Origin: Haliotis rufescens
Taxonomy: Eukaryota
Assembly (NCBI RefSeq): GCF_023055435.1
Contig: NW_025963779.1
Location: 14,632,001 to 14,696,000 of the forward strand
Direction: 5' to 3'
DNA length: 64,000 bases
Shown here: in pieces, positions 1 to 44,729 of the stretch
Layout: every line of letters begins with the position of its first letter
Position numbering within the stretch: the first letter of the stretch is position 1
Program-made: the position numbers and the translations under genes
The notes under the pieces: generated by a model
Seen by the model: only the letters and a program-made list of their open reading frames with translations
The model's database searches: none
Told to the model about the DNA's origin: nothing

Positions 1-648
1 GCACATTCATCAACGGATATTTAGTTAGGGACACTGTAGCTATTTACAAGTATATGTGTTATGATATGCATAAGAATAGGGAATTGTATTTGGCGTTCTT
101 TTGGCCATTGATACGTCAAATTTGGAAATGTCCTCCTCCACATGTCTACCATAAAAAAATGGTGTTTCTGTGGACGTTAAATTGTCTTGTAACAACACGT
201 TGACTCGATCCTGCTTCAAGCATACCAATACCTCGCAGGCGCTCATTTTCGGACAGGCGTGGCATTTCGTAATGTTGAATAATTGCGTAATGCTAAACAA
301 TGCATATGGAATCCCGTTAACGCACTTGTTTTTATACCCATTCTTTTGTTGTTGAGTATATTTGTGAATTGATAACGTGGTTCTTGACCATACCACATGA
401 ACATACACTTCCTTGATTAATCTCATTGTCCCAAAAATACGTATCGACGTGAAGATATCCTATTTATTTTCTTATTCAATAAGCTTGCAGACAGCTGTAT
501 TTGTCTCGTAACATTGTAAAGGCACGAACACAAGACAGTGTCTTCCTTATAACAAACAACATGGTTCTGTTGGATCTAAAGGGCGATGTCCTTTCTAGGA
601 TTCTATAGTTATTCAATGTCCAAATTGATTCATTTAAAAAATACTTAC

Positions 649-2492
649 GGTTCATATTTGATAGGATACCCTTCTGAGGTAAGGAGCTTCTTTTCAGTCG
701 TTGCAGTTAGCCCACCGCATTGTGTAGCTGTTATGTAAATACAAAAGAAGATAAAAGAGCTGATGTAAATAACATACCCTTATCATAGGACTACGTATCA
801 TTTACATTGTAAAAAAACCGGTAACAGTAAACCAAAAGTTGATAATTAGATATGCGACAATTTTACTTGTGAACAAAGCAACCATGTTTTTACGTTTTGA
901 TTGACAATGATGCTGCAGTGAGCGCAAATCAGCTTACTTTTTATAAGAAATCAGGTTATCACAAAAACCTATATTCACAGTCTCTTAAGCAACGAGGAAA
1001 AGAAATTTCTTTGGCTCCCACTTCAGAGAGAACATTGTATGTTTCGAGAAGTGACCGAATAGATATCCTGTCTCTAACATTAATCACAGATCCCCTCTCG
1101 AACCGAATAAAATATTGCCCCATTACATATATTGCTATAAACATAATGATGGTATGTAGAAAAGACTTGTTTATTTGTCATCGCGGTGTCATCACCGTAT
1201 TGTCAGCGTCGCCTCCATGAAGGTGTTTTGATTTCCAGTAACTGATACATATGTCCGCTGCCGATCAGACCGTGTTCTTTATGCGGAACAATAAGGTGGT
1301 CAGACTATAAATTGTTTGAATATTTTGAAATATATATTTCTCGATTATGTGTTGCAGTTGTGTATCACTTTGTACTTGATTGTGTAATTAAGGGGGAAAT
1401 AATTATTTTTCTGTAAAGTTATTTAGTTCATATAATTAATTACCCCTTTCCTGTATGTAATACTTTGAAAAATAGTATCTTAATATTGAAGGAATTTAAT
1501 ATTTAAAAGCAACATCCGCTTTTATGGAGATATTTACATATAAGTATAATCTAAGTTGAATGAATAAGCAGAGTTAAATATCGCTAAGTGGCATGTTTAT
1601 ATTAAAAAACTGCAAGTCATCATTGCACCTTCTTCCATTCAGGAATCCCAAACCATTGCATTAAATATAACCAGATGATTGTTATAATTTGCATACCGAA
1701 CCTTTGTCTGCTCACACATAGGGAATAAAAGCGACAAAACTATTCTACAATCATTGCCAAAAGGGGGTTCCATTGAACGATTTCGACTCTGTTATAAGCA
1801 TGACAATATGCTCGTGTGAGGATGAACGTTTCAACTCGTCACAAGCATATGTACAGTCAAGTATTTGAGTAAGAAGGCGTTCGGGCGTACACGAAGGGGA
1901 ACATCGCCTTGACAGTGGTATTTAACAACTAATCTATGTTGTAGGTTTCATCACAGTAGGAAAATGGTCGCATGTTGTATTTCTGCAGGAATATTGTACA
2001 ATATGATGTGTTTGATTTCATATTGAAATTATTACTTTCAGTGAATGGGACGTGAACATTATAATATGGAACGTAACAATACTTCATATTGACGATAGTT
2101 GTGAGAGAATTTACTCAATTTAAAAAATCCAAAATGTTTGGCCACAGCGAGGCACCACAACATATTGTGCTAGGCACGGTACAACTGGAATGAGGGAGGG
2201 CCGTATTCCTCCTTGTGGGTGACCTGCTTGGCAATTTCGGACGGGAAAACTNNNNNNNNNNNNNNNNNNNNNNNNNNNNNNNNNNNNNNNNNNNNNNNNN
2301 NNNNNNNNNNNNNNNNNNNNNNNNNNNNNNNNNNNNNNNNNNNNNNNNNNNNNNNNNNNNNNNNNNNNNNNNNNNNNNNNNNNNNNNNNNNNNNNNNNNN
2401 NNNNNNNNNNNNNNNNNNNNNNCTGACGTTAATGGGAGGTTGAGGAAACCCAGCATAGAGGTGAACACGAACCGCCAGTAATCTCGGCCCAT
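649..2492 (-). CDS. Gene A: 5' part of inverted paralog (exon 1 2492-2423 signal peptide; exon 2 727-649 CUB1a); presumably continues left of the window
   Basis: [23 protein letters not shown]; exon 2 [27 protein letters not shown], 79 nt with intact cag/gtaagt sites; the exon 1 donor is hidden by the N gap. Confidence 0.8.
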
Positions 2493-5089
2493 GGTAACAG
2501 GTGTGGGTCCAGCAGTATTCTGTATCAAGTGGGCTGCGCGTTTGCTTTTAGCCAGGACGTCTTGCGAAATTCGCTTTGTAAATGCGGGATAGGCGTGTTG
2601 CTTTAGGCCTTTAGGTCTTTTTTTTCATAAACACCTGAGCTGATAACGTTCAATGTCTGCCTTGCACCAGTCCTTGTACCCTGACGCGATCCTGCTTGTA
2701 CAATCAGGTGTAGAGCGAGGCGGGGCCTAATTTTCATTATCATAAAATATTTATTGAGGATTTAATGAATGCAGTGTGTAAACATACGGATAGATATTGG
2801 TGTGGCTATCTATTGACAGCCTACGTCTTTAACACGGCACTTGGAACCACTAAGACTGGGAATTGTCTACAGCAAACCAGGGAGTCTATATATAGACTCT
2901 ATCAGTGAACATATTGAGTCCGCCATCTTGGAATAGATATGTGGGTGGCGTTCTTATACATTTGCATAGGAGCTGGAATTTGACTGATGACCTTGTCTTT
3001 CTTACAGACCCCAGGTCATATATACAGTATCAAAACAGGCACCCGGATATCATATTCACAACCTACCCAGCTTTCACAGCCTATACACATCCCATTATTA
3101 TTATTATTATTATTATTATTTTAAGATTAAAAACAAAATGCAGCAAAGAGGGTTTGGGTGATAGAGGTTTTTTCGCCGGACTACCTTGCTATAGGAAGTC
3201 TTAACCAGACAATCCAGTCACACGATAAAGCATTTACTGACAATATGTTCACTTTAAATTACTTCAAATGGCGACGTTGCAGGGAATGTTTATAAAATGG
3301 TGCAAAGATGGTGCGTGGTGTCTCGTATCTGAATAAATCTACTTATATGCTCATGCATATACTTATGTAGTGGTTTGATAAATGTCACTTGACACTGGTC
3401 GATCATATCAAATGGCATATTGTACTTTGTTCACAACACATACATGTATGGAGCGACGCCCTGATAAGTGTGGCCACGCGGTTAAAGTCGATAACAATTT
3501 GAAGTGCATTACTACTACAAAACTGATTATGACATACGCATTTGCACATATGTCTCAATTCCCGTGTAGTGTATATGAAAACCTACTATTAAATATGGGT
3601 CTTTCCGTGGGTGACATGTGCTAAGTGATATAACAGTAGAACCTCAAATATTAGAAGTCAAACACGTTTTACGAATTCTGTACGGGGTATTACAATCAGA
3701 CAGACGGCCATGAAGACAGCTAAATATCTTGTAATTGTTGGAAATTAATGTGTAATGTAATTAATTGTCGTCAGTGCATCCAAGTTTCCGACACCTTGAC
3801 ATACCCTTTTAACTGCATGTTTGGTCACGTGGCCACAATGTTATAACTGATGACTTAGCTACCTGTATTGTGATATGTTTTGATTATGCAAATATATCTT
3901 TGCCGATTTTCCCAGTTTTGCCCTGTTTAGTATGATACCAGGATCAGGTTATTATACTCAGTCACACATGTCACATAACATATTTCACATATTGTCTATT
4001 AAACTGTAAACAAGGTTTAGACAAATAAACTTTGCGTTTTCTCTAGATATTTAATGCTTTTATGAATGTGTGGGGCGGTAGTTGAAGCATTATTCTGTCG
4101 CGCTAAATTGGATTTCATGTCCCATATGAGTACAATGTAAACGTGTAATCTGGTGCATCTACATGTAGACGTATTCTGTCGATATATTGCTGGCATACGT
4201 AATAACGCAGTGTTTATCCATGTCATGACAATGAAACAAAACACAGCATGACACACAGTTTCTACATTATGTTTAGAATGATCAGTTCAGTGTGGCAAAA
4301 ATAACACAATATACATGTATGATGTGAACAACTCTGAAGCGAAAATAACATATACTGATAAAAGTTAAATGTGCTAGTAAATATTGTCAGTTTGTGTTAA
4401 TTAATGAACCAGGTTTGATTGTTCTGACATTTGGTNNNNNNNNNNNNNNNNNNNNNNNNNNNNNNNNNNNNNNNNNNNNNNNNNNNNNNNNNNNNNNNNN
4501 NNNNNNNNNNNNNNNNNNNNNNNNNNNNNNNNNNNNNNNNNNNNNNNNNNNNNNNNNNNNNNNNNNNNNNNNNNNNNNACAGGCGATAACAAACTCCCAC
4601 AACATGGAGAGAGGAATTTTGAGGGGCTTTCTAATGTACCACCTTACCTTGAAGCATTGTTTGGGTGCAGGGAATGCTCGAAAATGGGTGATGTGATTTT
4701 CCAACGATTAATGAACACTTGAGGGAACATTGTGGCACGAATGTAATATTTTAAAGCCTTAATATTTTTATTTTAAATATCTTTAAAAAAATCCCATATT
4801 CTCACAAGAAGGTTATATGATGTAGGATCCAACTATATATACCCCGTCAAAAACAAATGCAAAGGTAAGTCAATTGTTCACCTGAAAAAAACCCACGGGA
4901 ACACATGGTACAAGTCAGAATAAGGAATTGCATTGGACATAATGTTTGTCACTGATGCGTCAAATTGTCCTCCAGGTCGTTACAGCGCATTCCACGAAGG
5001 TGTTCTTTCAGTTCATGAAACAGGTGGAAGTCACTTGGTCCAGGTCTGGCGAGTAAGGAGGGTGAGGAAGCTCTTCGAACCCACACTGG

Positions 5090-6864
5090 GTTATTTTAGA
5101 CCAATCGCACGAACAAGTTGTTTGGCAGAAGTATTTGAAAAATGTATCCATGAACATGTGTTTAACTTCTTCAATGACAACAGAATTCTGAGCAATCTCC
5201 AGTCAGGCTTTATACCAGGCGATTCCACAAGCTACCAATTATAAGATCTGTATAATTTATTTCAAAGGCTCTAGACAATGGAACAGAAGTAAGGGCAGTG
5301 TTTTGTGACATTAGCAAGGCCTTTGATAAAGTTTGGCATGAAGGATTACTTTATAAGTTATCTTCATGTGGAATTCGAGGAAAATTGTTGAAATGGTGTG
5401 ACAGTTATCTATCAAACAGAATACAAAAAGTGGTTATTAATGGTAAAGAATCAAGGTTAAAATCTATCACGGCAGGTATTCGACAGGGATCAGTCCGAGG
5501 ACCATTATTATTTTTTATCTCTATAAATGACCTGGTTGATACGTCACTTTATATTATTGTCGATGATCCTAACACAGCAGCGATTAATTTAAATGTTGAT
5601 CTAGGAAGGATATCCGTATGGGCGAATAAATGGCAAGTCACGTTTAATCAACACAAAACTGAAACCATAATGTTTTCAAGAAGAATTAATTCGAATAAAA
5701 CCTGTTCTCAAAATGAAAGATACTCCAATAACAGAGGTCTCATCGCACAAACACCTAGGGCTAAATTTACAGCAAGATGGCTACTGGTCAAATCATATAG
5801 ATAATATGGTAGATAAAGTAATGATTAACTGCTTTAGAACTTTCAAATACCGCCTGTCCAGGAAAACGTTATAGAATATATATTGGTATTGGAAAGGCTA
5901 AATGTTGACGCACTGAGAACAATATGTAGAGCTACTCGTGGTACCAACCACGAGTCTCTATACTCTGAAACTAACCTTACACCCTTATCCAAAAGACGGC
6001 AATCTCATAAATTAAAAACATTTTACAAAATGGTTAAGAAGTTGGCCCCTGAATATCTATGTAATCTTGTGCCTCCTAATGTCTCAGCGGGCGCACGTTA
6101 CAATTTAAGAACTTCTTCACAGCTACAGACTGTAAATGCTAGAACAGTTAACTATCACAAATCATTTTTACCCGACACAGTGCAAATGTGGAATGAATTA
6201 CTGGAAAATGTTCAGTCAAAATATACTGTAAATGACTTCACTAAATGTATCACCACGACAGAAAATCCTAAGATATTTAGTTTTAACTTAGACTATGGTA
6301 CCCGTTTCTGTCAAATTATCCATTGCAGCCTCAGATTAGGATGCAGTGATTTAAATGCACACAAATATCATAGACATATTCATGATTCTACTACCTGCTT
6401 CTGTGGATATCATTATGAGGATCCTACACATTACTTCTTTTCATGTCGCAACTACTGCAATCTTCGGAACAATATGTACTACTATATAAAGGGATATGAC
6501 TTGGATTCAGTTTTATATGGAAATGCTACAACATCTACTGATACTAACCTTGCTATTGTACAATCTGTCCATTTGTTCATTGCAAAATCTAAAAGATTAA
6601 AAATCTTAATATGTCTTCTAAACGATTACATCGATCTAATAGTTGTTTGTATGTGTGATACGCTGGTATGCTGTTTGTTTATGTACCGATATATGTATGT
6701 GTGCATTTATGTATTTGTGAGTGACTTGTATATCATCATAATATTTGCAACAGTAGGTACAATTAATCTAAATCTATTATCTTATGTACAATTTACTCTC
6801 ATTAATTGTTAAATGTCCCTTGTAGGGAGGGGTGTTTAAATAGGTTGAACCTGTTCACCGATCC
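5090..6864 (+). mobile_element. 5'-truncated, degenerate non-LTR retrotransposon (CR1/L2-group) RT C-terminal half and 3' UTR
   Basis: YFRPIARTSCLAEVFEKCI, QSGFIPGDST, FCDISKAFDKVWHEGLLYKL, GIRQGSVRGPLLF..INDL (catalytic FADD segment deleted), C-terminal CFCG..ED..HYFFSC; frameshifts. Confidence 0.9.
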
Positions 6865-6979
6865 CATTCCTTTTTCATGGAACAGGACAATCTTAAAGAA
6901 GTAAAAAGCGACGTTTCGGTATCGATACTTATACTGTTGCCAAGCAAGATTGTCCTGTTCCATGAAAAAGGAATGGGAT
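6861..6979 (-). mobile_element. Fold-back stub at the palindrome centre, Penelope-like (degenerate hammerhead motif in the loop)
   Basis: Perfect 34-bp inverted arms 6861-6894 and 6946-6979; the loop read on - is ...ttggcaac agtat aagtatcg atacc GAAACGTCGC, resembling the stubs at 9028-9177 and 22813-22892. Confidence 0.55.
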
Positions 6980-7039
6980 ACATTTTTCAAATACTTCTCC
7001 CAAACAACTTGTTCGTGCGATTGGTCTAAAATAACCCAA

Positions 7040-7215
7040 TGTGGGTTCGAGAGCTTCCTCACCCTCCTTACTCGCCAGACCTGGCACCAAGTGACTTCCA
7101 CCTGTTTCATGAACTGAAAGAACACCTTCGTGGAATGCGCTGTAACGACGTGGAGGACAATTCCAAATTTGACGCATCAGTGACAAACATTATGTCCAAT
7201 GCAATTCCCTATTCT
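7040..7215 (+). mobile_element. mariner transposase C-terminal relic (mirror copy at ~4915-5088 on -)
   Basis: ELPHPPYSPDLAPSDFHLFHELKEHLRG carries the mariner YSPDLAPxD motif; interrupted by the LINE. Confidence 0.85.
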
Positions 7216-9027
7216 GACTTGTACCATGTGTTCCCGTGGTTTTTTTTCAGGTGAACAATTGACTTACCTTTGCATTTGTTTTTGACGGGATGTATATAGT
7301 TGGATCCTACATCATATAATCTTCTTGTGAGAATATGGGATTTTTTTAAAGATATTTAAAATAAAAATATTAATGCTTTAAAATATTACATTCGTGCCAC
7401 AATGTTCCCTCAAGTGTTCATTAATCGTTGGAATATCACATCACCCATTTTCGAGCATTCCCTGCACCCAAACAATGCTTCAAGGTAAGGTGGTACATTA
7501 GAAAGCCCCTCAAAATTCCTCTCTCCATGTTGTGGGAGTTTGTTATCGCCTGTGNNNNNNNNNNNNNNNNNNNNNNNNNNNNNNNNNNNNNNNNNNNNNN
7601 NNNNNNNNNNNNNNNNNNNNNNNNNNNNNNNNNNNNNNNNNNNNNNNNNNNNNNNNNNNNNNNNNNNNNNNNNNNNNNNNNNNNNNNNNNNNNNNNNNNN
7701 NNNNNNNNNNNNNNNNNNNNNNNNNNNNNNNNNNNNNNNNNNNNNNNNNNNNNNNNNNNNNNNNNNNNNNNNNNNNNNNNNNNNNNNNNNNNNNNNNNNN
7801 NNNNNNNNNNNNNNNNNNNNNNNNNNNNNNNNNNNNNNNNNNNNNNNNNNNNNNNNNNNNNNNNNNNACCAAATGTCAGAACAAGCAAACCTGGTTCTTT
7901 AATTAACACAAACTGACAATATTTACTAGCACATTTAACTTTTATCAGTATATGTTATTTTCGCTTCAGAGTTGTTCACATCATACATGTATATTGTGTT
8001 ATTTTTGCCACACTGAACTGATCATTCTAAACATAATGTAGAAACTGTGTGTCATGCTGTGATTTGTTTCATTGTCATGATATGGATAAACACTGCGTTA
8101 TTACGTATGCCAGCAATATATCGACAGAATACGTCTACATGTAGATGCACCAGATTACACGTTTACATTGTACTGATATGGGACATAAAATCCAATTTAG
8201 CGCGACAGAATAATGCTTCAACTACCGCCCCACACATTCATAAAAGCATTCAATATCTAGAGAAAACGCAAAGTTTATTTGTCTAACCCTTGTTTACAGT
8301 TTAATAGACAATATGTGAAATATGTTATGTGAGATGTGTGACTGAGTATAATAACCTGATCCTGGTATCATACTAACAGGGCAAAACGGGGAAAATCGTA
8401 TTTGCATAATCAAAACATATCACAATACAGGTAGCTAAGTCATCAGTTATAACATTGTGGCCACGTGACCAAACATGCAGTTAAAAGGGTATGTCAAGGT
8501 GTAGGAAACCATGGATGCATTGACGATAATTAATTACATTACACATTAATTTCCAACGATTACAAGCTGTCTTCATGGCCGTCTGTCTGATTGTAATACC
8601 CCGTACAGAATGCGAAAAACGTGTTTGACTTCTAATATTTGAGGATCTACTAACACAAGGTGTCACCCACGGAAAGACCCATATTTAATAGTAGGTTTTC
8701 ATATACACTACACGGGAATTGAGGACATATGTGCAGATGCGTATGTAATAATCAGTTTTGTAGTAGTAATGCACTTCAAATTGTTGTCGACTTTAACCGC
8801 GTGGCCACACTTATCAGGGTGTCGCTCCATACATGTGTGTGTTGTGAACAAAGTACAATATGCCATTTGATATGATCGACCAGTGTCAAGTGACATTTAT
8901 CAAACCACTGCATAAGTATATGCAAGAGCATATAAGTAGATTTATTCAAGACACGAGACACCACGCAAATTAATAATAAATCCAACTTTCATAACTCCTT
9001 TGACAGGCATTTAGAAGTTGAAGTACA

Positions 9028-9177
9028 AAGTAAGGATAAGAATTTATGGATGAACAACTTCTTAATTACAATTAAGAGCGACGTTTCGGTGTAGGTTCGT
9101 CGTAGGTGTAGTGAAACGTCGCTCTTAATTGTAAATAAATAAAGAAGTTGTTCATCCATAAATTCTTTTCCTTACTT
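9028..9177. mobile_element. Inverted (tail-to-tail) Penelope-like stub
   Basis: ~60-bp inverted arms each with GAAACGTCGC followed by an AT-rich tail (AATAAA on the right arm); tccaactttcat is repeated at 8981-8992 and 9177-9188. Confidence 0.6.
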
Positions 9178-10298
9178 CCAACTTTCATGTAAAAAAAGAA
9201 TATTTAATGAGAGGATTATTGCAGCAGGAATATTTTACCAACAGGTGTTTACATGTATTTATCAAACATTACAATTTATCAATTCCTTCACACTGTAGCA
9301 TTACAGTAAAGATTGTACATTTACATGTATGAAGAGTATGGCCGCGGTGTTATAGTTCCATAAAACCTTTAATTAGTACCACAGAACAACAAAATAGTTT
9401 TAGTAGGAATCCGCGAACTTATCCGCTGATTATTCGCAGTTTTACTGCAGAACACGATAACAAACTTGTACGTTGTTGTGTAATGTCGGCGCTTTGATAT
9501 CTTTGCAAAGCATTTTAGACGGTGTCACACGATAGTGTGTGTTAGGCCTCTATTTATTGTGGAGGGTTGTTATAGGCTGCGTTCAAACTTATAGTAGGGC
9601 TCCCTACTTCATTGCAAGAACAAATTAAACCCGACAGCAGGCAATGTCAAAAGGGTTACACAACTTTACAATTGCTTACTGATTTGGGCGAATTGAGTTG
9701 TCGGGTAGACGTTGCTGTATTCTTTCGTTGATTTATATGCTCGTCTAGTAACATCGTCATTAAAGGGGTATAACCTGCTGTAAAATATCAGGATTTTCAG
9801 TGATCCATTCATATTTATTTAATCACGATTTTACCTTTCACTTAATTTTTGTGTGTCAGATACTCGAGACGTTGATGTTATAGATTTACATACATACAGT
9901 GTAAAATATGATCTTTGCACCATTTTATAAACATTCCCCGCAACGTCGCCATTTGAAGTAATTTAAAGTGAACATATTGTCAGTAAATGCTTTATCGTGT
10001 GACTAGATTGTCTGGTTAAGACTTCCTATAGCAAGGTAGTCCGGCGAAAAAACATCTATCACCCAAACCCTCTTTGCTGCATTTTGTTTTTAATCTTTAC
10101 ATAATAATAATAATAATAATAATAATAATTGGATGTGTATAGGCTGTGAAAGCTGGGTAGGGTGTGAATATGAAACCCGGGTGCCTGTTTTAATACTGTA
10201 TATATGACCTGGGGTCTGTAAGAAAGACAAGGTCTTCAGTCAAAACCCAGCTCCCATGCAAATGTATAAGAACGCCACCCACATACATGTATCTATTC

Positions 10299-10347
10299 CA
10301 AGATGGCGGACTCAATATGTTCACTGAGAGAGTCTATATATAGACTC
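10299..10347 (+). promoter_or_regulatory. Candidate promoter motifs conserved in all three paralogs: YY1-like CAAGATGGCGG and an 18-bp palindrome GAGTCTATATATAGACTC
   Basis: About 400-440 bp upstream of each ATG; copies at 2882-2930 (-) and 51911-51958 (one mismatch in the palindrome). Conservation may merely reflect recent duplication. Confidence 0.3.
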
Positions 10348-10738
10348 CCTGGTTTGCTGAAGACAGTTCCCAGTCTTAGTGGTTCCAAGTGCTGTGTTAA
10401 AGACGTAGGCTGTTACTAGATAGCCACACCAATATCTATCCGTATGTTTACACACTGCATTCATTAAATCCTCAATAAATATTTTATGATAATGAAAATT
10501 AGGCCCCGCCTCGCTCTACACCTGATTGTACGAGCAGGATCGCGCCAGGGTACAATAAAGGACTGGTGCAAGGCAGACATTGAACGTTATCAGCTCAGGT
10601 GTTTATGAAAAAAGGACCTAAAGGCCTAAAAAAAACGCCTATCCCGTATTTACAAAGCGAATTTCGCAAGAAGTTCTGGCTGAAAGCACACGCGCAGCTA
10701 ACGTGATACAGACCACTGCAGGACCAACTCCTGTCACC

Positions 10739-10808
10739 ATGGGCCGAGATTACTGGCCGTTCGTGCTCACCTGTGTGCTGGGTTTCCTCAACCTTCCATT
10801 AACGACAG
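10739..10808 (+). CDS. Gene B exon 1, signal peptide [23 protein letters not shown]
   Basis: gtcaccATGG Kozak context, hydrophobic core, donor G|gtaatc (phase 1); conserved in all three paralogs. Confidence 0.85.
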
Positions 10809-13800
10809 GTAATCTCATAATTATGATCACTATATGCCTTCTAGGACAACCTGTGTAATATGTACCGGCATGTAACCGTCTGACCGCCCATGGCGGGCTA
10901 GGTACAGGGTTTACTGGATGTACAGTCTTCGACAAACGAATAGTGAGTCTGTGGGATATTTATAAATATGTAGGTCAGGCGTAGGAGTATTGATCAATGG
11001 ATGATGTGATGCGTACAACTATGGCATCTTTTTTATGCAGGGATCTGCCTAGTGAGCGACTATAGCAGGGGATGAAACTCCCAAAAATTTCAGCCAGACC
11101 ACAGGACTGGTTAGCTGAAATACTTGCCCACTATGTTTCTCAGGATCATTTAATCAAAAATATGAAAACTGATTGCTTGTAGCATAAGCGCATCGCTAAA
11201 TGTTAGGTTGTCTAAAAGCTAACGGGGTTTCTTTTTGGTTACATTTTATCATTCATCTTTACATGTGGATTAATGCTTATCATCGGGAAATATTTAGAAT
11301 ATTTTCACCTTGAAATATAACCCGACCGTCGGGCAGGGGGATTTGAAAAACTGGCAGCCCGAGCTGAAATCAACCCGTCTCGGACGGTCGGGCAGGCAGG
11401 TATTTCGGACGCTGCTATAGTGGATTATAGTATATAGTGTGTACCGTAGTTGATGCAATTTATCCCTCTTCTACTCTAAAGCTTTAATTACAATGTATAG
11501 AATATAGTATGTTTTTTATGTATATATAATATGTCTAAGCTGTTTATATAGTGTACGCTTTAGCGTTATTTAAAGTAGTGTATGCATCAGTGTATAGATT
11601 TGTTAAGGGAAACAGTTATTGGGAAACGGGGAGAAGAGGAGAGGGGATGAAGATTTTTTGTTGGAGTCTTTATTTAACTGCTTCAAAACATCCAGTTTAT
11701 TTTTTACAACACATGTTTTCAACTGTATAGTTGTTGGCAAAATTATTTTTAGAAAATGCCCATAAATTATATANNNNNNNNNNNNNNNNNNNNNNNNNNN
11801 NNNNNNNNNNNNNNNNNNNNNNNNNNNNNNNNNNNNNNNNNNNNNNNNNNNNNNNNNNNNNNNNNNNNNNNNNNNNNNNNNNNNNNNNNNNNNNNNNNNN
11901 NNNNNNNNNNNNNNNATTAAATGTATCATCGAGTATCAGTAAGAAACTAGAAATAACTGCCTTTGTTCTGAAAATCTCACCAAGTTTCAGCTTTCGCCTC
12001 TTCCTTTGTGGAATGAGGTTTCACATTTGTAAAATGATCTCTCTTATCTGTGCTCTCACCCCCTGCAGTTTTCCCGTCCAATATTGCCAAGCAGGTCACC
12101 CACAAGGAGGAATACGGCCCTCCCTCATTCCAGTTGTACCGTGCCTAGCACAATATGTTGTGGTGCCTTGCAGTGGCCAAACATTTTGGATTTTTAAAAT
12201 TCAGTAAATTCTCTCACAACTATCGTCAATATGAAGTATGGTAACGTTCCATATTATAATGTTCACGTCCCATTCACTGAAAGTAATAATTTCAATATGA
12301 AACCAAACACATCATATTGTACAATGTTCCCGCAGAAATACAACATGCGTCCATTTTCCTACTGTGATGAAACCTACAACATAGATTAGTTGTTTAATAC
12401 CTCTGTCAAGGCGATGTTCCCCTTCATGTACGCCCGAAAGCCTTCTTACTCAAATACTTGATTGTACATATGCTTGTGACGAGTTGAAACGTTCATCCTC
12501 ACACGAGCATATTGTCATGCTTATAACAGAGTCGAAATCGTACAATGGTCCCCCCTTTTGGCAATGATTGTAAAATAGTTTTGTCGCTTTTATTCCCTAT
12601 GTGTGAGCAGACAAAGGTTCGGTATGCAACTTATAACAATCATCTTGTTATATTTAATGCAATGATTTGGGATTCCTGAATGGAAGAAGGTGCAATGATG
12701 ACTTGCAGGTTTTTTAATATAAACATGCCAATTAGCGATATTTAACTCTGCTTATTCATTCAACTTAGATTATACTTATATGTAAATATCTCCATAAAAG
12801 CGGATGTTGCTTTTAAATATTAAATTCCTTCAATATTAAGATACTATTTTTCAAAGTATTACATACAGGAAAGGGATAATTAATTATATGAACTAAATAA
12901 CTTTACAGTAAACTAATTAACTCTATTTATTACACAATCAAGTACAAAATGATACACAACTGCAACACATAATCGAGAAATATATATTTCAAAATATTCA
13001 AACAATTTATAGTTTGATGTACTATGCCCGGACAACCAATAAGCAGCTGTTAATGGGATTGTTATGCCCTTTAGTTAGTTTGTGGGAATTTATTTAACAA
13101 TATATTCCTCGATTGATATCTAACACTTGATGTGAACAGGTAAATTGGATAACTTGATCCGTTAATTAATTGTAGCCGGTGTAACCGATAGGGAAGGGCA
13201 TGCTTACCCTTTTCGGGAACAACTGGTATCATCACTGTTTCATAGATCCATTCAATATTTACCACTATTTTGCCTCCCCCCTCCCCCAATGGAATGTGTT
13301 TGGTCCGATAATCGAGACTGTTTATTCTCTTCCTTTGACGTTCTATATTCATATTGTGGGACCGTGGACATGGTAGAGGATTTCATTATTGTCGCAATAA
13401 TATGTTTTCACAATCTGTTACCCATGTGATCAGAAACAAGAGAGAATTTATTATTGAATAGGTAAACTAGTGTACATGCCACGTCAACTCAACACTAGAG
13501 AATAATCAGTCTCGATAATCTACCGAAACAGATTCCACTGGGCGTAAGAGGAAAAATAGTGGTGAAATTTATATGTATGAGTCACTGGAAATCAAAACAC
13601 CTTCATGGAGGCGACGCTGACAATACGGTGATGAAACCGCGATGACAAATAAACAAGTCTATTCTAAATACCATCATTATGTTTATAGCAATATATGTAA
13701 TGGGGCAATATTTTATGCGGTCACTTCTCGAAACATACAATGTTCTCTCTGAAGTTGGAGCCAAAGAAATTTCTTTTCCTCGTTGCTTTTTGTAATTGAC

Positions 13801-16800
13801 ACGGGTATTGATAAATTCTGTAACGGTTAAGAGACTGTGAATATAGGTTTTTGTGATAACCTGATATTTATAAAAATGTAAGCTGATTTGCGCTCACTGC
13901 AGCATCATTGTCAATCAAAACGTAAAAACATGGTTGCTATGTTCACAAGTAAAATTGTCGCATATCTAATTATCAACTTTTTGTTGACTGTTATCGATTG
14001 TTTTACAATGTAAATGATGGTAATCCTATGATAAGGGTATGTTATTTACATCAGCACTTTTATCTTCTTTTGTATTTACATAACAGCTACACCATGCGGT
14101 GGGCTAACTGCAACGACTGAAAAGAAGCTCCTTACCTCAGAAGGGTATCCTATCAAATATGAACCGTAAGTATTTTTTAAATGAATCAATTTGCACATTG
14201 AATAGCTATAGAATCCTAGAAAGGACATCGCCCTTTAGATCCAACAGAACCATGTTGTTTGTTATAAGGAAGACACTGCCTTGTGTTCGTGCCTTTACAA
14301 TGTTACGAGACAAATACTGCTGTCTGCAATCTAATTGTATAAGAAAATACACAGGATATCTTCACGTCGATACGTATTTTTGGGGACAGTGAGATTAATC
14401 AAGGAAGTGTATGTTCATGTGGTATGGTCAAGAACCACGTTATCAATTCACAAATATACTCAACAACAAAAGTTCCTGTGACACCAATATTTTAGTGTAT
14501 TTTTCAAACAAGTAAAGTTTGGTTTTCAATATTGTAGTATATGTATGGAATCAAGTCACACAAACGCAACTGCTACCGAAAAGCATGCATTCCATGCAAA
14601 AGTTTACTTTTATGCAAGCCCCATGCATTTCACTACCAAGGAATGGGTATAAAAACATGAGCGTTAACGGGATTCCATATGCATTGTTTAGCATTACGCA
14701 ATTATTCAACATTATGAAATGCCACACCTGTCCGAAAATGAGCGCCTGCGAGCCATTGGTATGCTTGAAGCAGGATCGAGTCAATGTGTTGTTGCAAGAC
14801 AATTTAACGTCCACAGAAACACCATTTTTTATGGTAGACAGGTGGAGGAGGACATTTCCAAATTTGACGTATCAATGGCCAAAAGAACGCCAAATGCAAT
14901 TCCATATTCTAATGCATATCATAACACATATACTTGTAAATAGCGAATTATGCGAACTTTACACTACACAGCATATGCACAATCATTTGCACCGTAGAGT
15001 AATAACTAAGCATGCAGGAAATAAAATATACATAATTACAAAATTATTTTAGTCACAATATCTATAAGCAAATATTCAATAAATATCGACAACATGGTAA
15101 TTCAAATGGGTCATACACAAAAGTCGCCACAATATGCTTCATTGAAAAGTCTATTCCACTAACTAATAGTTACAATTTCAGTTCACAAACATGCTCGTGG
15201 AGTCTCCAGGCATCTAACGCTACCAAGAATGTAATTCTAGAAACAGTGGACATGATGATACAACCCTCAACTGGTTGTGTTGATGATTCAGTCAGCATAT
15301 ATGACGGTAAGAACAGTATACCCCGTGGGGATCCCGGGATCCTACATGTAGTATGCTGCTCGTAAGAGGCGACCAAATGGATCGGGTGGTTAGGCTCGGT
15401 GTCCTCGTACCATGACGGCGTGGTTTGTGGGTCACGATATCGATTACTGGGTTATCTGGTCCAGACTCGCAACTTAACAGACCACCGTCAGACAGCTGGA
15501 AATTACTACACTCATATGTCTTCTATATTAGATGTCTCGTATGTGACTAAACATGAACGTAAAAACACAATTAGTATGTGCCAGAAACTGACGTCATTAC
15601 CTTTCGCTAAATTGACAAATTGACTGATAAAATTGAGCATTATGCTAAAATTAACTATTGTGTCTTTGTACCATTACCTAAGTACAGTGAATGAGTTAGC
15701 GATTGTTGATCAACAATATTACCGTCATTATACGTCGGCTTTAAACAATGATGTTTTCATCATTTTATGTGATGAATGGAAAAGTCAAAATCATGTTAAC
15801 GAAGTGTTATATAACGAGGCAGTCAGTAATATAAAAGCTATATTCTTGTTACATGTACAAATGTCTTTACACTACAAGCTCTGACTGTAGCGCATATACA
15901 TTGTTTACAGTTCTTATATGCTCTGCAATAGAGAAATCACTCCCCGCGTGTGATTCCGAAACGACGACATAAAATTAAAGCATTTATAATAATCAATATT
16001 ATAATTATGTTTTAATTGGACATCGTCGTATATATCAGCATTTTTATTAATAAATCATTGAGTACTTAGTTCTCAATATTATTTTTAAAAATGTTATTAT
16101 TGTGGTAGCTTATATTTTTTTATTCCCCCTGTGCTTCCATGTGTTATGCGTTGAAAGTAACATTATTGATTTTGAAATATGTATTATATAATTTCACTAC
16201 AGGTGACTCCAACTCTGCCACTAAGCTACACACGTTATGTGGAGTGGATAGCCTTGTGACAATAATGAATGAAGCGTGTTTACAAAATCGTATCGAAAGT
16301 ACTGTCTTGTTTTTAAATGTTCAAAAGAAGACAAACGACGACATAAAATAAAAGCATTCAATATTATAATGATGTTTTAACTGGACATCGTCGTATATTT
16401 CAACATTATTATAATCATTGTTTACTAATTTCGCACTTTTATTTTCAAAATGTTAGTATGGTTGCAGCTTGTATTTATGTATTTCCCCGATACTTCCATG
16501 TGTTATGCGTTGAAAGTAACATTATTGATATTTATATATACATATTATAATTATAATTTCACTACAGGTGACTCCAACTCTAGCACTAAGCTACACACGT
16601 TATGTGGAGACAGTCGTGTGTTTGTGACCTCATCGGGACGGAACATGTACCTTGAATTTCGTTCCAACAGTATTCTGGAGACAAGAGGCTTCCAGTTCCG
16701 ATACTACCAGGGAGACAGTATGTAATTCCAAAGTCATTATCAGCCATTAAACACACGCTTCTCAAATGTTCAGAATACCACGTCAGGTCTTATGGCAAAC

Positions 16801-19800: not shown

Positions 19801-22800
19801 TCGTTTCTTGTCATGTTACCTTCTTTGTAACACCTATATACAAGCGTGGGGAATAATAATTACATTTACATTTCGTGGTTCAGTTTATAAGTGAAAGAAC
19901 ATATGAATATTGTTTAATGCCGCAGTCACATTAGTATTCCAGCTATGTCGCGGCGGCATGTCATTAAAGAAGTCTGGGCCAGCCCAGTTAGTCCCAGAAC
20001 CACCGGGTCCTCTTTAATTGACTCTCTGTTTAATGATAATGAAGAAAGTCCTTGTGATAAACAGTGTTAGATGGTGCATGGTATACATGTAGGGTGGATA
20101 AATGATAGATGAATGGATTAAAGAGTACTTAAATTATTATCAAAGATAGGGACATGTGAACTCCAAAGTAACTGTGAATGAATTAATAACTTCTATTATG
20201 GAGTGTATGGCCTGACAGATTGCACACCTATCCCTGTACATTGAAAGAAAAACACTTGCCAAGATCAATACAGATAAATACCGATTCAATTAAAATCGTC
20301 TCTCCCTTTCAAACTTCTGTCTACACTTTAAATACAAATACCCCTGGGTTTCACAACAATTTGTGTAAACAACACAAAATCTTTAGAAAAGAGCCCATCT
20401 TCAGCCCAAATAAAACAAAAGAACATAATACATCTCACATAAACGAAATGATGTGCTTCAAGAAAAATCTCAAGTTGATGAATACGAACATGGTCACAGT
20501 TACTCTTGCCTTTGGTTACAGCTAAATAATTGTCTTTGTACCTTAAACTTAACGGGTTTACAATGGTAAATAAATACCCCTCTGTTGGGACAGGAAAAGA
20601 AATCATACGTAATCCTTAAGGGTAAGATGCATACTTAAACCAAGTCCCACATTGCGACTATATGATACCTATTTAAGCAACAAACTTTAGGTACCGAGGG
20701 ACAAAATGTATTCTGGACGGATTATATACACATAGATCAGTGGATTATTTACGCGATGGATGAAGAATAACATGGATATGTGGCGATACACCTTGATTCA
20801 ATGAGTAGGATTCAAATGTTTCTATTGATATTAATGTTTATAAAGGTCATATGCTAAATGGATAAAGGATTGTATAGCGGATAAATGTGGTGGTATCATT
20901 TGCCTTTTCCTTGCAATGTAACTTATCTTCAATTGTGTAAATATATGACACAATGAATACACAATGTCAATATAAAGTGGTCAGATGTAACAAATGTTAT
21001 ATTTGGGATAAGACTTTCTTAGTAAAGTACCGAATCTCGAACATTTGTTAGATTTGACCACTTTCCAAATGACATTGTGTATTCATAGCTTTCGGCCATG
21101 GGAGCCGTGCCAATTTCCACTTGTCTGAGGGGTACACAAAGTACGTGATCTAGACTACCAGTTGTTGGATTTTCATTTTTGTGGAAGCCTCGGTGGCTGA
21201 GTGGGTTAGATCACTGACTTTGTGTGCTGGCGAGTAGGTGCCTCACTCTGGCAAGTGTGTGTTCGAATCCTGGACGGGACTCAACCTAAGAAAGAAAGAG
21301 AATCTCTACTTTACTCAGAAAGTGTTATTCCAAATATAACATTTGTTACAATATATGACACGTTTCAATACAAGCAAGAATTACATTTTGAACTTTATGG
21401 CGAACGCGATTCCTAGAACATAATTGTCCAGCCAATGTATGAGATTCCACCATTACCTGACCATTACCTCGATTTTCATAGTTTGGGCAATGCACTAGAC
21501 ACTGAGCCACATTGTGAAGCTGATTACAAACTGTACGATTTGCAGAAGTGTCGGGGTGTGCACCAAGACCACAATGTCCGAAACGAAGTCTTCTCTTTGA
21601 TTGTCTCGAGATATTTGTTATTTATTAATAAAAAGATCGATGCCATAGAGATATTGTGTAAATATAGCTTTGCTCTTCCAGCAACATGAACTGCCGTTGG
21701 ACCATCGTGGCGACGGATAACGATGCTACGGTCGAACTGGTTGCTGTCATCTCCGACATTGCCGACACTTCCCCATCTTGCAGCAGTGACAAAGTGTCTG
21801 TGATGGACTGTACGTTTCTATGTTAATGATGTTAATGGATAATTACATTTGATAAATTTAAATTTAAAACAATATTCAAGAAAATGTCAGTTCCGTAGGT
21901 GGTGATATGATCATAAGAACAGTATCTATTCAACGATGTCACTCAGTGATTGGCTGGGCACTTGCCGCGTTTTCGGGATTTCGGAATCTTTGGTTAACTG
22001 TTAAAAAACAAATGCAGGAAGTATAAGGACGAGAGTAAAGAGGGATCTCGCAGTTTCATTCTTTACACACATACACATATTTATCATATATCGGATTTTA
22101 TGAATGCTAAAAAGAGGAAATGTGAAATGTGTTGAAATATGGTCGAAGGTTTGCACGTGTACATGTAACATTGTCTTCCCATTCCTGAGCTGATGGACAG
22201 TGGGGGCATTATAGGTTGAAACATTTTGGTCATGTCGAAAATTGTGACACACATATACGTGTATACACCATAGACCGGATTTCGTGAATGAAAAAGGTGC
22301 AACTGTCAAATGTGTGAAATGTGTTAAACAGGTTTATATTTTATTACCATCTTCAGCTGATATGACAGAACTGGGGACATTCTGTGGAACGAACAAACCT
22401 ACATATAATAGTGCAGGACCAAACATGACTGTTGTCTTCACGACTGATGGCACCAATCAGGCAACAGGATTTCGTCTGAAATACAAGCAGAAACGAGGTG
22501 CGTCATGCTTCATTGAATCTGTCACATTATAATAAGTTTTGTTTGTAAAAGAAATAAGGAAAGAATACGTAACACGTGTCATCGCGGACACTGCATATAT
22601 CCACTGTATTTCATCTGTTGAGGGATTCTTATGTAAACACAACACTTCTCAATAATTTTCCAAAGACACAATGGACAGCCCATATGTGGATTAAGAAGCC
22701 TCAATCAGATAAATTTGTAGGATGCTTTACTTTATGAATTTCAAATGTATTTACTAAAACAATTTATAAGGTAATTAAAATTCAATTCATCGTTGCGTGT

Positions 22801-25800
22801 ACATTTGGAAAATGATGAAGGAGTAAGCATATACTCCGAAACGTTGTGTTGCTCATAATAAAGAATTTGACATCAATTTATTCTCTTCCTGATGTACCAA
22901 TTTGTCAAATGCACGGCTGGTTTCTCGTTATCAAACTTGTACAGAAATAGATATAATAAGAATTTGGTTTAAATGTCAGAGCTATTTTTAGTGTAAATGT
23001 AAACCAACAGAACGCAGCAGTATTAGGGGCCCAGATGCGTAGCGTGACTATAGTAATCGTACAACAATACAGATTGTCAGACACATTAACACCTTTTCGT
23101 TTAGTTTTTTTTCATTCCTTACTGTTTTAAAGTTATTTGCTGTGTATCTCTAAATCTAAGAAACCCAACAAATTAACGTCTTCACCCAAATTATCAGCAT
23201 CCCATTCTGGTCCGGTGTAGTTATAGATTATGTGGGGACACGGATGGACTGTACATGTTGCGTACCTTTGGGGTACGAGAAACCGATTGCCATGGATTCG
23301 AGTACAATGTTCTCCCTGCTTATGTTACTAGGTTTATCACCACCAGAGCCGTGCCCGTGTGTTTAGCCATATAGATTACACTACTGATTTCACTAAGTTT
23401 ATTCCCTTTGCACGTGACGCAACCCGTGTGCTCAGTGACGTTGTACTTCGTGTTACATCTTGCGATTGACCAAATTTAATCATACCGTACTATGATGTTT
23501 GCAGCCGCACCGGCAACGTGTGGAAGGACATTAACAGCTTCAAATCCTGAGGAACTGCTTTCGCCAGGCTACCCAAGAGCATATTTGAGGTATGTTACAA
23601 GAGGTCAGTCAGGTATTCCTGTGTTGAATTGATCAGCAAATGCTGATAAATGAACGCTTTGGGAGATTATTAATTAATATTAATTCACAGGTGTTTGTTT
23701 GTGTGAGAAAGCTAGATTTAACGCCGTCTTAGCACTGGAATCGTTTTATGTTGAAGGAAAGCTCAAAATAACACGCAATTGTTTACCTCTATGGAAAACC
23801 AATGAGCAGGAGTTTGGATCTGCAAGCGGGAATCTTGGCTTTGAACCTCCTATCATAGTATCCCGACACGATCAAGGGACGCAACACTGCTACACTAATT
23901 TGCATTGGAATGTTTAACCGTCGACGGGTTTTTTCTATGTCGAGACTTGTATGTGAACAAAATGAACAAACAATTGTCCAGTAGAAGTTACTTGTCTCAA
24001 TATGATCTTCGTGTTACAGGTCACAAACATGCACATGGACAATTACGGCCTATAATGAAAGCTTCGTCAATCTCAGGCTTGTTGACATTGATGTAGAAGT
24101 TAGTGATCAGTGTCAGCCGGATAGCCTCAAAATATATGACGGTAACCATTTGCATGACTTTGCATTCTATATACTCCAAGGCAAGAGTAACTGTAATACT
24201 TTAACATTATTTTCATTAACAATGGCTTTGCCTTAATGGCTTTTTATATTATCAATGGTCTGTGTACAAGGCAAATCCCTTCATGCAGAAGTATGGAATG
24301 AACAACTCCAGTCATCGCAATATGACTTACGTACAAAACAAAAATGTAAGTTATAGGTAGGTACTTCTTAATTGTTAACAGGGGGCAATTCTACAAGTCC
24401 TCTTCTCGGAACTTGGTGTGGGCAAATGAACGGTTACAGGTTACAAAGCACAGGGAATGTGATGACTCTTGTCTTCAACACTGACGACTCCAATAACGGA
24501 AGAGGATTCAACGTCAGATATAAACAAGACTCAACTCGTAAGTTTGTTTATTTGAAATCAATCTTAGTAAATTTTACGTATGAGTTCGACAGTTCGCCAA
24601 ATGTTTACGTATCAAACATTGTGTTCATAAACAGCAATTCGAATAATTATTACAAATTCCTATTCCAAATTAGTGTTAAAAAGATACAGTTCTCTCTTTT
24701 TGCAAATGTATGAATGTCATAGAAATTAATGTAACAGTTACTTTCTTTCAATAACGGTCATTTCATGGCTGTGCGAGTCCACAAATATAATTTAGTTTTC
24801 TTGTCTTTCAAACAGGTATGGGATGCATCGATAGCTTTAAATCTACAGACACATATTCCTACATCACCTCGCCGAACTACCCGAATTCTTTCCCAGGGTT
24901 TGTAGTTTTAATCTAGAAAAAAAGACTTTACAAAGGTACTGATGTTCATTGAAACTCCGTTAGTCCGTACCCCGTTCATCCACCCGTGAAGATCCAGGGT
25001 AGAATAGGTCCTCAGCAACCCTTGCTTGCCGTAAAAGGCGATTATGCTTGTCGTAAAAGGCGACTAACGGGATCGGGTTCGGGGTAAAACTATGTGAGAA
25101 ACTATGCCATCTCAATAAAAATATATCTTAGTGGTATCTGAGCGGGCTGTGATGCTAGATATGGACATGGCATGTTGGACATTTGAAACGGAAGAGCCTG
25201 CCCATAGTGGAAGGTACTGCCATACTATCTCAGCCACATATTACACTTTACATTTCCTTTGTGAAGTCAAGATATTTACAAGGCACAGTCTGAAGTGGAA
25301 GTCGCCACTTTGAAACTACGACCGTAAAGCCCGTGAAAGCTGTCGACTTCCTGATGCCATCTCAATTAATTAGTTCATGTATTTTATTCAGATGTATATG
25401 TTGGAAATTATCCAATTTGAGAATGTTATTGATATTTTGAGTAATTACTGCTAGAAGAACAAAACGGCAAGAGTAAAGATGAAAGACGATGAGGATACAT
25501 ACCTGTGATATATAAGTTAACCAAATATAAATAGAAATCAATGTTCAGGATATCTGTCGCGAAAAATGCAAAACCATATGTATTTTGTATTTATAATTTT
25601 GAGCCTGAATGTTTTGTTGTGGAAGAAACACCTTGAACAATGTAATTGTTGTGCCAAGCAATTTCCTTTTTTCCAAAGTCTGAAGCAAAATTCTTTTATT
25701 CAGTTTTGTTTTTTATTATTTGTTTCAATAAAATCCTCCCTGACGCCCCACCTCCCTCTTCGAATAGCAAATTGTTGGTCCCTTACGTACCGAATAATAA

Positions 25801-41895: not shown

Positions 41896-42300
41896 CATCT
41901 TCCGAGGCAAGGATGTTTCCACCCTTGCCGAAATAGGCCTGAATTCCGGAGTTAAATTTGGCTGGACTAACGGCGCATAGTCTGATCAAAATCGCGAACT
42001 AGACATCCGGTTCGTAAACCACATGGATTTCAAAATGCAGACTGTCGATTGCATTATTTGAAAAGCATGTGTACCGCCAACCGGGCGTCGACAGATATTT
42101 AGCAAACCTTCTCATGTTCTTAATGGAGGTGCTCAAGTGATGTGATGCACTTCGCGGGGTAAGATTCGTTTTATAATAATATAGATCTTGATTATCAATC
42201 AGATCGTCTTGACTGAGCGCCATTTTGTTTGACGCAAATGCAAGTGATATGAGACGGACCTAGAAGGGACATAACTCATTGGTGGCGCTACGATCGAGCC
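41896..42300 (-). mobile_element. MITE of CATCTTCCCGAGGCAA-TIR family, one end lost
   Basis: catcttccgaggcaagg start; internal region is the reverse complement of 36790-37130 (shared pseudo-ORF [11 protein letters not shown]). Confidence 0.8.
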
Positions 42301-42301
42301 T

Positions 42302-42685
42302 TAGTGGACGTTACACGAACGTTCTGAGAACATCCCATTACAGGTCTCGTCTCGTGACCTTTCGCGAACCAACCAAAGAAATGACTAACACTAAGTCGAC
42401 AGTAGCCAATCAGAAAGCAGCTCTCTTGATCTTAAGGCGCTAGTTTCGACATGGCGATTTCCATTTCAGACCACATCCTGAAAGATATTTCCACAAAGTT
42501 CTCAATTCAAAATTTGAAAACTGAACAACAGAATATTGTGGAATGTCTAATTGGGGGCCGCGATTGTACGGCAGTACATCCCGCGGGTTGTGGAAAGTTT
42601 TGTCCGTTGCAGCCCGTAACTGTCGTACTGAATGTCCATGTTACCTTTTTTGAGGTTGCATGACGAGACCTTTAATGAGACGTCT
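42302..42685 (+). mobile_element. Internally deleted Academ(H)-like DNA transposon carrying a RecQ-type helicase N-terminus
   Basis: ORF 42451-42663 LKTEQQNIVECLIGGRDCTAVHPAGCGK resembles the RecQ Q-motif plus Walker A; starts TAG; subterminal inverted repeat cccattacaggtctcgtc / gacgagacctttaatgag. Confidence 0.6.
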
Positions 42686-42982
42686 TTTAAATTGTATAGC
42701 GGCTGCGCTGACTTAGATCTGATTTTAATGAGTTTGGTATTTTAGACAGGTACATTATTCCATTGCAGGTGAAATCATAGACTATTAGTGTGAAGTCGTG
42801 GACGGTCACAGCAACATTTTGTTTTGAGATGGATCGTGCTGAAAGACTCACACCAATAAGTAGATTACACATTTTCATCGTTGTCGAACAGGAACAGTTC
42901 GGGACCATTAATAGATAATATGGTAAGGGGCGTATTGATTTCAAATGGTATATATGGAAGGGAATCCAGTGCTGAATTTGTC

Positions 42983-43841: not shown

Positions 43842-44729
43842 CAGAGACTTGTATTTTCGCTATTTAGAGAGATCGATTAATCATAATGTATATCTATGTC
43901 AAAGAACAATATCTGATTTCAAGATTTTGTTACGTCCATTTGATGTATTTGAAGAAGTCGATCATTATAACTTCTGAAATATATTTACCTTTGTTATGTT
44001 CTGCGATTGACTGTGAATTTTTAGATGCTGGTAGATCTCTCTTACTGTCCACCAGCTGTCGGGCATAAAGGTGTTTTGAATGTCAACACACATTTACGCG
44101 TATGAGTGAGTCATCATTCATGACGCCCTCAACATGTTCAATGGACTAATGATTTACAGCTTGAGACAGGTTGAAGTGTAAGTGATCAAAGAAAGAATTT
44201 GTTTGAGGGGAACTGCAATCGCTTGTTTTGAAAATGGATCGACTGAAATTATAACAGACCTCCAGGTAATATACGTATTTGCGTAAGCTGTGCACAACAC
44301 TTCACCATAACCAAATTAAAGTACGCAAAGTAAAGTCAAAACAATGGTATAACGACACAGTGTAATTACCCAATGTAGTCTTTTTAACTTGGGTACCTGT
44401 ATGTATTTGCAAATATATTATAATATATACTTTTAAATCTTGCAACAATGTATTTCGTTTTTATTTCAACAGTCTGAAGCATAGTTATTTCATTACAGGC
44501 AATTTCTGCAAAAACATTTTTTTTCGAAAAAATCCCAGGTCCCCGTCCCATTCTTTTCAACTCAGCCTGTACATAATCAAGTCTGGAGTAGACAAACCAA
44601 TGGTTGACTTATGTGCAACGTTCCACGCCGTCGGAACACGATAAAACACGCACGTCATCGAACCTGGGCACAAGATCCAATTATTTGTCGTCTCTTTACG
44701 AAATTACGTCCTAGAGTTATAGAATAAAG

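Follow-up and report, generated by a model that had tools for sequence, protein, structure and literature searches.

Fold-back junctions in human inverted duplications carry a single-copy spacer together with microhomology or insertions (PMC3907307; Hermetz et al. 2014), and fold-back makes short templated inverted insertions (PMC11724301). A second type of structure, the duplication–inverted triplication–duplication (DUP-TRP/INV-DUP), is formed by two template switches (PMC9851044). The stretch examined here (the window) is 64,000 nucleotides (nt) of DNA from Haliotis rufescens (contig NW_025963779.1; C1:14,632,001-14,696,000), taken from a 1.33-Gb animal assembly, and contains the centre of a large palindrome with copies of a gene encoding a signal peptide followed by multiple CUB domains. 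An earlier note on this DNA had described a palindrome of about 15 kb ending at 38 and 14944. A self-comparison covering 227 kb around the axis shows a known kind of structural change that is much larger than first described: the palindrome probably forms the core of a germline rearrangement, about 100 kb in size, that affected a multi-CUB gene cluster and produced an inverted triplication flanked by duplications. All coordinates are given in window numbering, with negative values lying to the left of the window.

Inverted homology is present between 39-5149 and 6976-14944 at 94-97% identity. It does not stop there, as had been proposed, but resumes beyond these positions, with its left limit at -27,537 and its right limit at 42,254. 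The suspected further extension to the left is real: the 20 kb to the left of the window are the inverted homologue of 14,943-34,864. The two arms are about 34-35 kb long. The left arm L (-27,537 to 6,894) and the right arm R (6,946 to 42,254) are inverted relative to one another with 91-98% identity, and the part of L inside the window (1..5089, minus strand) consists of colinear inverted matches to 6976-42254. A third copy, U (-92,792 to -54,266), lies about 100 kb upstream in direct orientation and matches R from 6,946 to 46,657 at 93-98% identity. The site at 14944..14945 that had been taken for the palindrome end is a position at which R lacks 55-60 nt that are present in L (1-38 and a further 15 nt leftward) and in U, with 2 nt of microhomology.

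Two further pairs of blocks accompany these copies. V1 (-48,255 to -38,980) and V2 (55,858 to 68,915) are direct copies of an older paralogue with 92-96% identity, while the outer blocks X1 (-38,053 to -27,480) and X2 (93,689 to 103,995) are inverted with 91-94% identity. Inside the window V2 occupies 47600..64000 (plus strand) as an older direct paralogue of the unit, 80-89% identical to R; it was duplicated along with R, and its counterpart V1 lies behind U. The unit tail (42255..46657, plus strand) is common to R and U only, and at this point the left arm switches to a copy of 93,690-103,995. The order along the chromosome is U and V1 in direct orientation (-92,792 to -38,054), X1 and L inverted (-38,053 to 6,894), a 51-nt centre, and R, V2 and, further on, X2 in direct orientation (6,946 to 103,995). 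The 35-kb block at 6,946-42,254 is present in three copies with the middle one inverted, and 42,254-69,711 and 93,690-103,995 are present in two copies each. A search of the 1.33-Gb assembly found exactly three copies of an arm segment at 98% identity or above, all of them in this region, and one diverged copy of the segment was found genome-wide, at 89-93 kb.

The blocks meet at three junctions. At J1 (-38,053; C1:14,593,947) the homology between V1 and V2 ends (at the equivalent of 69,711) and the inverted homology to X2 starts at the same base (103,995). The two sides share 0-1 nt of microhomology, and the junction is sharp to the base in gap-free sequence. J2 lies near -27,500 (about C1:14,604,500), where R (42,254) gives way to X2 (93,690) as the sequence most similar to the left arm, and falls inside about 1.1 kb in which R and X2 are paralogous (84-92%). 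The region 85,100-93,700 (C1:14,717,100-14,725,700) corresponds to the 3' part of the unit (34.5-44.2 kb) as an older partial copy with 72-92% identity, and this copy is the source of the paralogous sequence used at J2.

J3 is the axis itself, the joint between inverted and direct sequence. The left arm stops at 6894, whereas 6901-6945 is absent from L and, together with the right arm, is colinear with U. The unrearranged state is preserved in U, which has, in order, a full foldback-repeat arm of about 115 nt, the 34-nt stem sequence, a reversed long interspersed nuclear element (LINE) and the arm. Between the two parts at J3 stands the insertion aaagaa (6895..6900, plus strand), possibly including the g at 6901. 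This insertion of 6-7 nt repeats, in inverted form, the cttcttt that the unrearranged stub of U has 7 nt further out, and 1-2 nt of letters are shared at the switches. The segment 6901..6945 (44-45 nt, plus strand) is a single-copy loop made of a truncated, mutated arm of the foldback family, to which similarity continues until about 6954. The colinearity with U and the inverted copy of nearby sequence together identify J3 as a fold-back junction that has left a loop in single copy and gained a short templated insertion.

The earlier note had placed the axis at 6895-6945 and not at the LINE, in contiguous sequence. This is correct, and the stems at 6861-6894 and 6946-6979 are perfect 34-nt complements around the 51-nt spacer; inverted homology, spacer and stems are all real, and J3 is contiguous. 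As single-stranded DNA the central hairpin has a calculated energy of -40 kcal/mol (z = -10.6). The stems are not host DNA: the left stem (6861..6894, plus strand) is composed of 22 nt of LINE tail and a 12-nt link, and the right stem (6946..6979, plus strand) is its reverse complement. The LINE is 5'-truncated (5090..6882, plus strand) and carries a reverse transcriptase (RT) domain (RVT_1, E = 4e-14), a CCHC motif at the C-terminal end and, at 6861-6882, its own 3' tail. Both L and U contain the element, and its tail occurs in all three copies. A stretch of 1,711 nt of the LINE (5150..6860), bounded by the 4-nt repeat atcc, is missing from the right arm, which retains the LINE's 5'-most 60 nt or so (6980..7037, minus strand, encoding ..FRPIARTSCLGEVFEKCI). 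Since both LINE ends are retained in R, the 1,711-nt gap is an internal deletion. An interpretation of R as an empty LINE insertion site was rejected, because more than ten other LINE copies align through 6882 and diverge beyond it, and other LINE copies align from 5090 straight over 5149/5150, so that both ends of the element sit in R. The 34-bp arms of the earlier description do pair perfectly, but they are not a primary short inverted repeat; they are the remnant of longer arms after the LINE deletion in R.

The copies show similar degrees of divergence. The substitution distances are 3.6-3.75% for L-R, 3.6-3.8% for U-R and 3.2-3.5% for U-L, and 3.9% for V1-V2, 4.6% for X1-X2 and 3.0% for the unit tails. 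U, L and R are equidistant, and every duplicated pair falls within 3.0-4.6%. No arm-to-arm homogenisation was seen, L and R being no closer to each other than U is to R or to L. Each copy also has gaps of its own. In R these are the 55-60-nt gap and the loss of 1,711 nt of the LINE. Missing from L are 8967-9911 and most of 13017-13571, and missing from U is 25,204-26,098 (895 nt, with a 4-nt repeat at the edges; cf. C1:14,558,714-14,558,716). The gap in U is a private deletion because it cuts through a dispersed repeat. Grouping L and R as sister copies from stretches that U lacks was rejected for the 895-nt case on this ground, and because part of the stretch is present in an older paralogue. 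Together, the 895-nt gap in U and the 1,711-nt and 55-60-nt gaps in R show that structural decay in these copies has come mainly from small deletions bounded by microhomology.

The locus resembles the fold-back inverted duplications of the human series (PMC3907307) in having an inverted and a direct copy around a short single-copy stretch, in the small amount of microhomology or the small insertion at the joint and in its germline nature. It differs in the size of the loop (44-45 nt here versus 766 nt to 70 kb in human), in being interstitial, without a terminal deletion and with a third direct copy and two further junctions, and in its age, since the copies are 3-4.6% diverged whereas the human cases are de novo. 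With DUP-TRP/INV-DUP (PMC9851044) it shares a threefold segment with the middle copy inverted and twofold flanks, which template switches can explain. In this case the differences are that J2 uses direct paralogous sequence as a third switch, that neither J1 nor J3 showed a pair of pre-existing inverted repeats, and that the structure is in an invertebrate gene cluster, where it may be fixed or segregating, and is not a disease allele.

Two other kinds of palindrome invite comparison. Cunningham and co-workers are said to have found in 2003 that asymmetric central rearrangement stabilises long palindromes. The locus is likewise a very long palindrome with a tiny spacer in which an asymmetric, microhomology-bounded deletion begins 34 nt away from the centre, although here only a historical footprint is seen. 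In the ampliconic palindromes of sex chromosomes the arms are more than 99.9% identical through arm-to-arm gene conversion. The locus is similar to these in its arms of tens of kilobases and in its gene copies facing away from a short spacer, but its arms are 96.3% identical and are no closer mutually than to the third copy.

The spacer had been read in the earlier note as a Penelope-type stub. Its minus strand contains GAAACGTCGC, which is found at two other places in the window, and 6901-6957 matches a repeat with at least 568 first-look candidates genome-wide. Intact copies of this family are foldbacks of about 230-250 nt that are 97-99% alike; eight family copies have their ends within about 130 nt per arm, and their flanks are unrelated. 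Intact copies on other chromosomes include L007:1472-1682, L008:1455-1690 and L009:1413-1636. The second foldback copy in the window (9028..9177, with GAAACGTCGC on both strands) lies within 8967-9911 and is present in R and U, not in L. Minimal hammerheads of Penelope elements have been described by C3-G8 or U3-A8, an extra nucleotide after A9, G10.1-C11.1, GAAA and a palindromic 15.2-16.2, with a long helix II and motif pairs on opposite strands also listed (PMC4209133; Cervera and de la Pena 2014). On each strand, the intact copies have UUGACAA, an extra C, a 6-bp helix II GGUAUA..UAUACC (G10.1-C11.1) and then GAAACGUC with a palindromic ACGU. An exact match to the pattern TTGACAAC-GGTATA-N(4-8)-TATACC-GAAACGTC occurs in each of L007, L008 (both strands) and L009. 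Judged by sequence, the intact family copies fit the published description of a U3-A8 Penelope-type minimal hammerhead, including the dual motifs on opposite strands, and the spacer as a piece of this family can be called a Penelope-type stub.

The putative motif differs from the published Penelope hammerheads in other respects. No hammerhead matched at the Rfam gathering score anywhere in the window, and at E <= 10 a search of 6600-7300 and of one full family copy gave no hammerhead but only generic sub-threshold hairpin or miRNA matches, which mirror the shape of the hairpin. No Penelope RT/GIY-YIG reading frame was found among the open reading frames (ORFs) of 1-16,500, which contain only the LINE RT (RVT_1), its CCHC tail and helix-turn-helix (HTH)/transposase relics; GIY-YIG reading frames occur elsewhere in the genome. 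The spacer copy is itself decayed. On the minus strand of 6901-6945 it reads TTGGCAAC-AGTATA.., with the changes A6>G and G10.1>A, a weakened helix II and a single truncated arm. The stub was already one-armed at the time of the event, because the LINE that replaces its second arm sits in all three copies. Foldback copies are found at just five places in the 227 kb, and the family makes up roughly 0.01-0.3% of the DNA. Of the junctions only J3 is in a foldback stub, and J1 and J2 are near none; the placement of J3 inside the family by chance is unlikely.

Contigs from the Logan resource were compared with 6300-7500, using four runs from four studies; such contigs show presence, not absence. 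A contig of 145 nt from run X7 covers 6848-6979 with two differences at a depth of 47. It spans the spacer completely, extending 47/85 and 98/34 letters to either side of its two edges. Run X7 carries U-type letters at 7292, 7320, 7327 and 7354, which indicates that it does not derive from the assembled individual and that J3 is present in at least two animals. Contigs from runs X1 and X5 cover 6950-7029 and 6950-7141, respectively, without differences and confirm the deletion joint at 6979/6980.

Of the three junctions one is blunt, one falls in paralogous sequence and one is a fold-back with a templated insert; together with the similar divergences, this pattern matches template switching during replication or break repair. 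Either replication-based template switching or repair by fold-back would have formed the rearrangement, in a single event or in several that followed closely on each other. J3 would have arisen by fold-back with a short templated insert, leaving the loop of 44-45 nt, and the copies would then have diverged by 3-4.6%, each taking its private microhomology-bounded deletions. The loss of 1,711 nt of the LINE from R broke the symmetry beside the centre and would have stabilised the palindrome. The proposal in the earlier note that fold-back priming seeded an inverted duplication is in this respect supported, as a fold-back type of event fits the junction.

Several observations weigh against a single replicative event, and some of them favour other explanations. 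Most human DUP-TRP/INV-DUP structures have a pre-existing inverted repeat pair at a junction, and none was found here at J1 or J3. Block by block, the copies form a mosaic in which the closest pair is U and L, U and R or L and R. This mosaic requires gene conversion or recombination, and the equal distances could therefore reflect population diversity instead of a single age. A series of separate events can be envisaged in which an older direct duplication (U-V1/R-V2) was followed by a double-strand break in the stub, an intrastrand fold-back with inverted duplication of R...X2 and finally unequal recombination that removed 50 kb from the inverted copy. The position of J2 in paralogous sequence is what ordinary non-allelic recombination would give, PMC3907307 describes fold-back junctions of this type, and the distances of X1-X2 and of the R-U tails are unequal. 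However, every pair lies in the same narrow band with U, L and R equidistant, and simple fold-back at a break gives a dicentric or terminal structure, whereas this one is interstitial and U-V1 ends exactly where the inverted part starts. We regard separate events as rather unlikely. A break made by a Penelope element, through a GIY-YIG cut, its habit of inverted-terminal replication or a primed fold-back, with the palindrome as by-product, would account for the location of J3 inside a repeat whose intact copies resemble Penelope minimal hammerheads and which is too sparse for the breakpoint to be readily a matter of chance. The existence of GIY-YIG reading frames in the genome and the close likeness of the intact copies, hence recent activity, are also in keeping with it. 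Yet there is no Penelope reading frame at or near the axis, where the sole reverse transcriptase belongs to the LINE, and no new Penelope sequence was added at J3. The stub with its two core changes was one-armed at the event and persists unrearranged in U, which also speaks against an active motif in the spacer, and J1 and J2 have no stub within reach. A Penelope-made break is very improbable. The link to Penelope is limited to the identity of the decayed stub, and neither a hairpin-driven break nor the Penelope cut suggested in the earlier note is supported.

The 227 kb contain four runs of N, all within 5 kb of the axis, and none is present in the remaining 163 kb. In L, the run at 2252-2422 has flanks that align to 12067 and 10808 of the right arm, between which R has 1,258 positions including its own run of N at 11774-11915. 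The run at 4436-4578 in L is at the mirror position of that at 7555-7867 in R (4435 pairs with 7868, and 4579 with 7553), so that both arms are broken at the same homologous place; U is without this stretch. Because of these runs, the contig that bears J3 (4579-7554) is tied to the outer arms by scaffolding only. The read support consists of short contigs, and 6300-7500 offers no single-copy flank as a depth reference. Beyond 6979, 13 letters of the contig from run X7 do not fit the right arm. The simplest reading would be an undeleted LINE there, which hints that the deletion is younger than the junction. A contig from run X5 (and one from run X1, by its length) is identical to 6901-6979 but is preceded by TTAATACT, the unrearranged stub. 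This combination of an unrearranged stub with right-arm-type sequence may be an allele of U, or J3 may be polymorphic. The same combination would be expected from a misassembly of a highly heterozygous genome in which L (with X1) is the other haplotype of R or U and was set next to it in reverse orientation. The arms differ by about 3.6%, an amount comparable to allelic variation in many marine invertebrates, the mosaic resembles that of recombining alleles, and the runs of N cluster at the axis, two of them at mirror positions. On the other hand, the sequence is contiguous at J1 and J3 and the joined sides share hardly any letters that might mislead an assembler, J3 has a templated insertion, and its exact sequence is found at ordinary depth in a contig from an independent run. 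L has deletions and an outer junction of its own, a diploid could not carry all three copies as alleles, and the rest of the assembly holds no spare haplotig copies. An artefact of this kind is distinctly unlikely.

The gene carried by the rearranged unit consists of a signal peptide and multiple CUB domains, and exists in three close copies (U, L and R) and in older ones (V1/V2 and the unit at 85-93 kb). The diverging head-to-head start codons noted earlier are present at 2492 (minus strand) and 10739 (plus strand), 8,247 nt apart. The first exon of the left copy (2423..2492, minus strand) begins with the ATG at 2492 and encodes the signal-peptide-like MGRDYWRFVFTS...; its donor site is exactly at the edge of the run of N at 2252-2422, and intron 1 thus starts in that run. 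The first exon of the right copy (10739..10807, plus strand) is likewise signal-peptide-like and is followed by a GT donor. Scanning of long ORFs, with exons taken singly, located CUB exons on the plus strand at 15168..15317 (the N-terminal half of a domain, E = 1.2e-5), 16558..16704 (the C-terminal half, a weak match), 22332..22484 (E = 1.8e-6), 24378..24521 (E = 8.8e-8), about 29.2 kb (weak) and 40261..40404 (E = 1.3e-5, the last found in the arm). Every CUB exon found falls within the arms, and the left arm holds the mirror copy. An excess of third-codon changes, used as an exon signal, gave ten candidates, none with a Pfam match. In the left copy two substitutions turn CAC into TAG at the equivalent of 16594 in a CUB exon (-2004..-2006; C1:14,629,994-14,629,996), while U and R keep the codon. 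No receptor marks such as a membrane-spanning segment were found in the gene. The creation of a new receptor gene, as the earlier note had it, does not agree with these data: the gene was already present in three close and further diverged copies, and the inverted copy has a TAG in a CUB exon and an intron 1 that begins in a run of N. There is no sign of a working new gene from the rearrangement.

Other repeats are found in and around the arms. The LINE was inserted in a relic that looks like a Tc1/mariner element, present in the left arm at 4976..5088 (minus strand; many genomic copies match exactly this range) and in the right arm at 7038..7283 (plus strand), where it is part of a very high-copy repeat and contains the motif ..HPPYSPDLAPSDFHLF... 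In each of the four runs its word depth reaches 10^4-10^5, compared with tens for the neighbouring DNA, which places it among the most abundant repeats of the genome. The relic (4976-5088 and 7038-7283) has no Pfam match even at E <= 10; its mariner label rests on the HPPYSPDLAPSDFHLF motif and the very high copy number, and we take this transposase motif to indicate a Tc1/mariner derivation. A separate, internally deleted Tc1-like element is seen at 14719-14944 (39-260, minus strand), with an N-terminal helix-turn-helix joined directly to the C-terminal tail. Its matches to HTH_23/HTH_38 are weak, and its TACAGTG-type end is within the 55-60 nt lost from the right arm. The hairpin at 6864-6976 (minus strand) gives an Rfam match to mir-3718 with 37.8 bits (E = 6e-7), below the threshold of 78, a score that probably reflects merely its hairpin shape. 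In the unit tail, a tandem array at 42978-43832 has 25 units of 34 nt, alternatively read as 102 nt. The 34-nt unit contains CTGATG... and ...GAAACGTG, a hammerhead-like pair of boxes, but is too short for a usual ribozyme; related arrays are present at about 95.2 kb and near -29,000 in the left arm.

The locus provides a natural inverted triplication with flanking duplications, resolved to the base and with three readable junctions, outside human disease genetics. Its later decay is also visible, in the private microhomology deletions, the symmetry-breaking deletion beside the centre and the stop codon in the inverted gene copy. It further cautions that a palindrome read within a single window may be just a small part of something far larger, and that stems can be transposon ends. 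The position of J3 raises the testable question of whether abundant Penelope-type foldback stubs are breakpoint hotspots. That decayed Penelope-type minimal-hammerhead stubs might be preferred sites of fold-back template switching in this genome, repeatedly seeding inverted segmental duplications and driving gene clusters such as the multi-CUB cluster, is a long shot. For the gene family itself, the rearrangement shows copy gain in a cluster of secreted multi-CUB genes.

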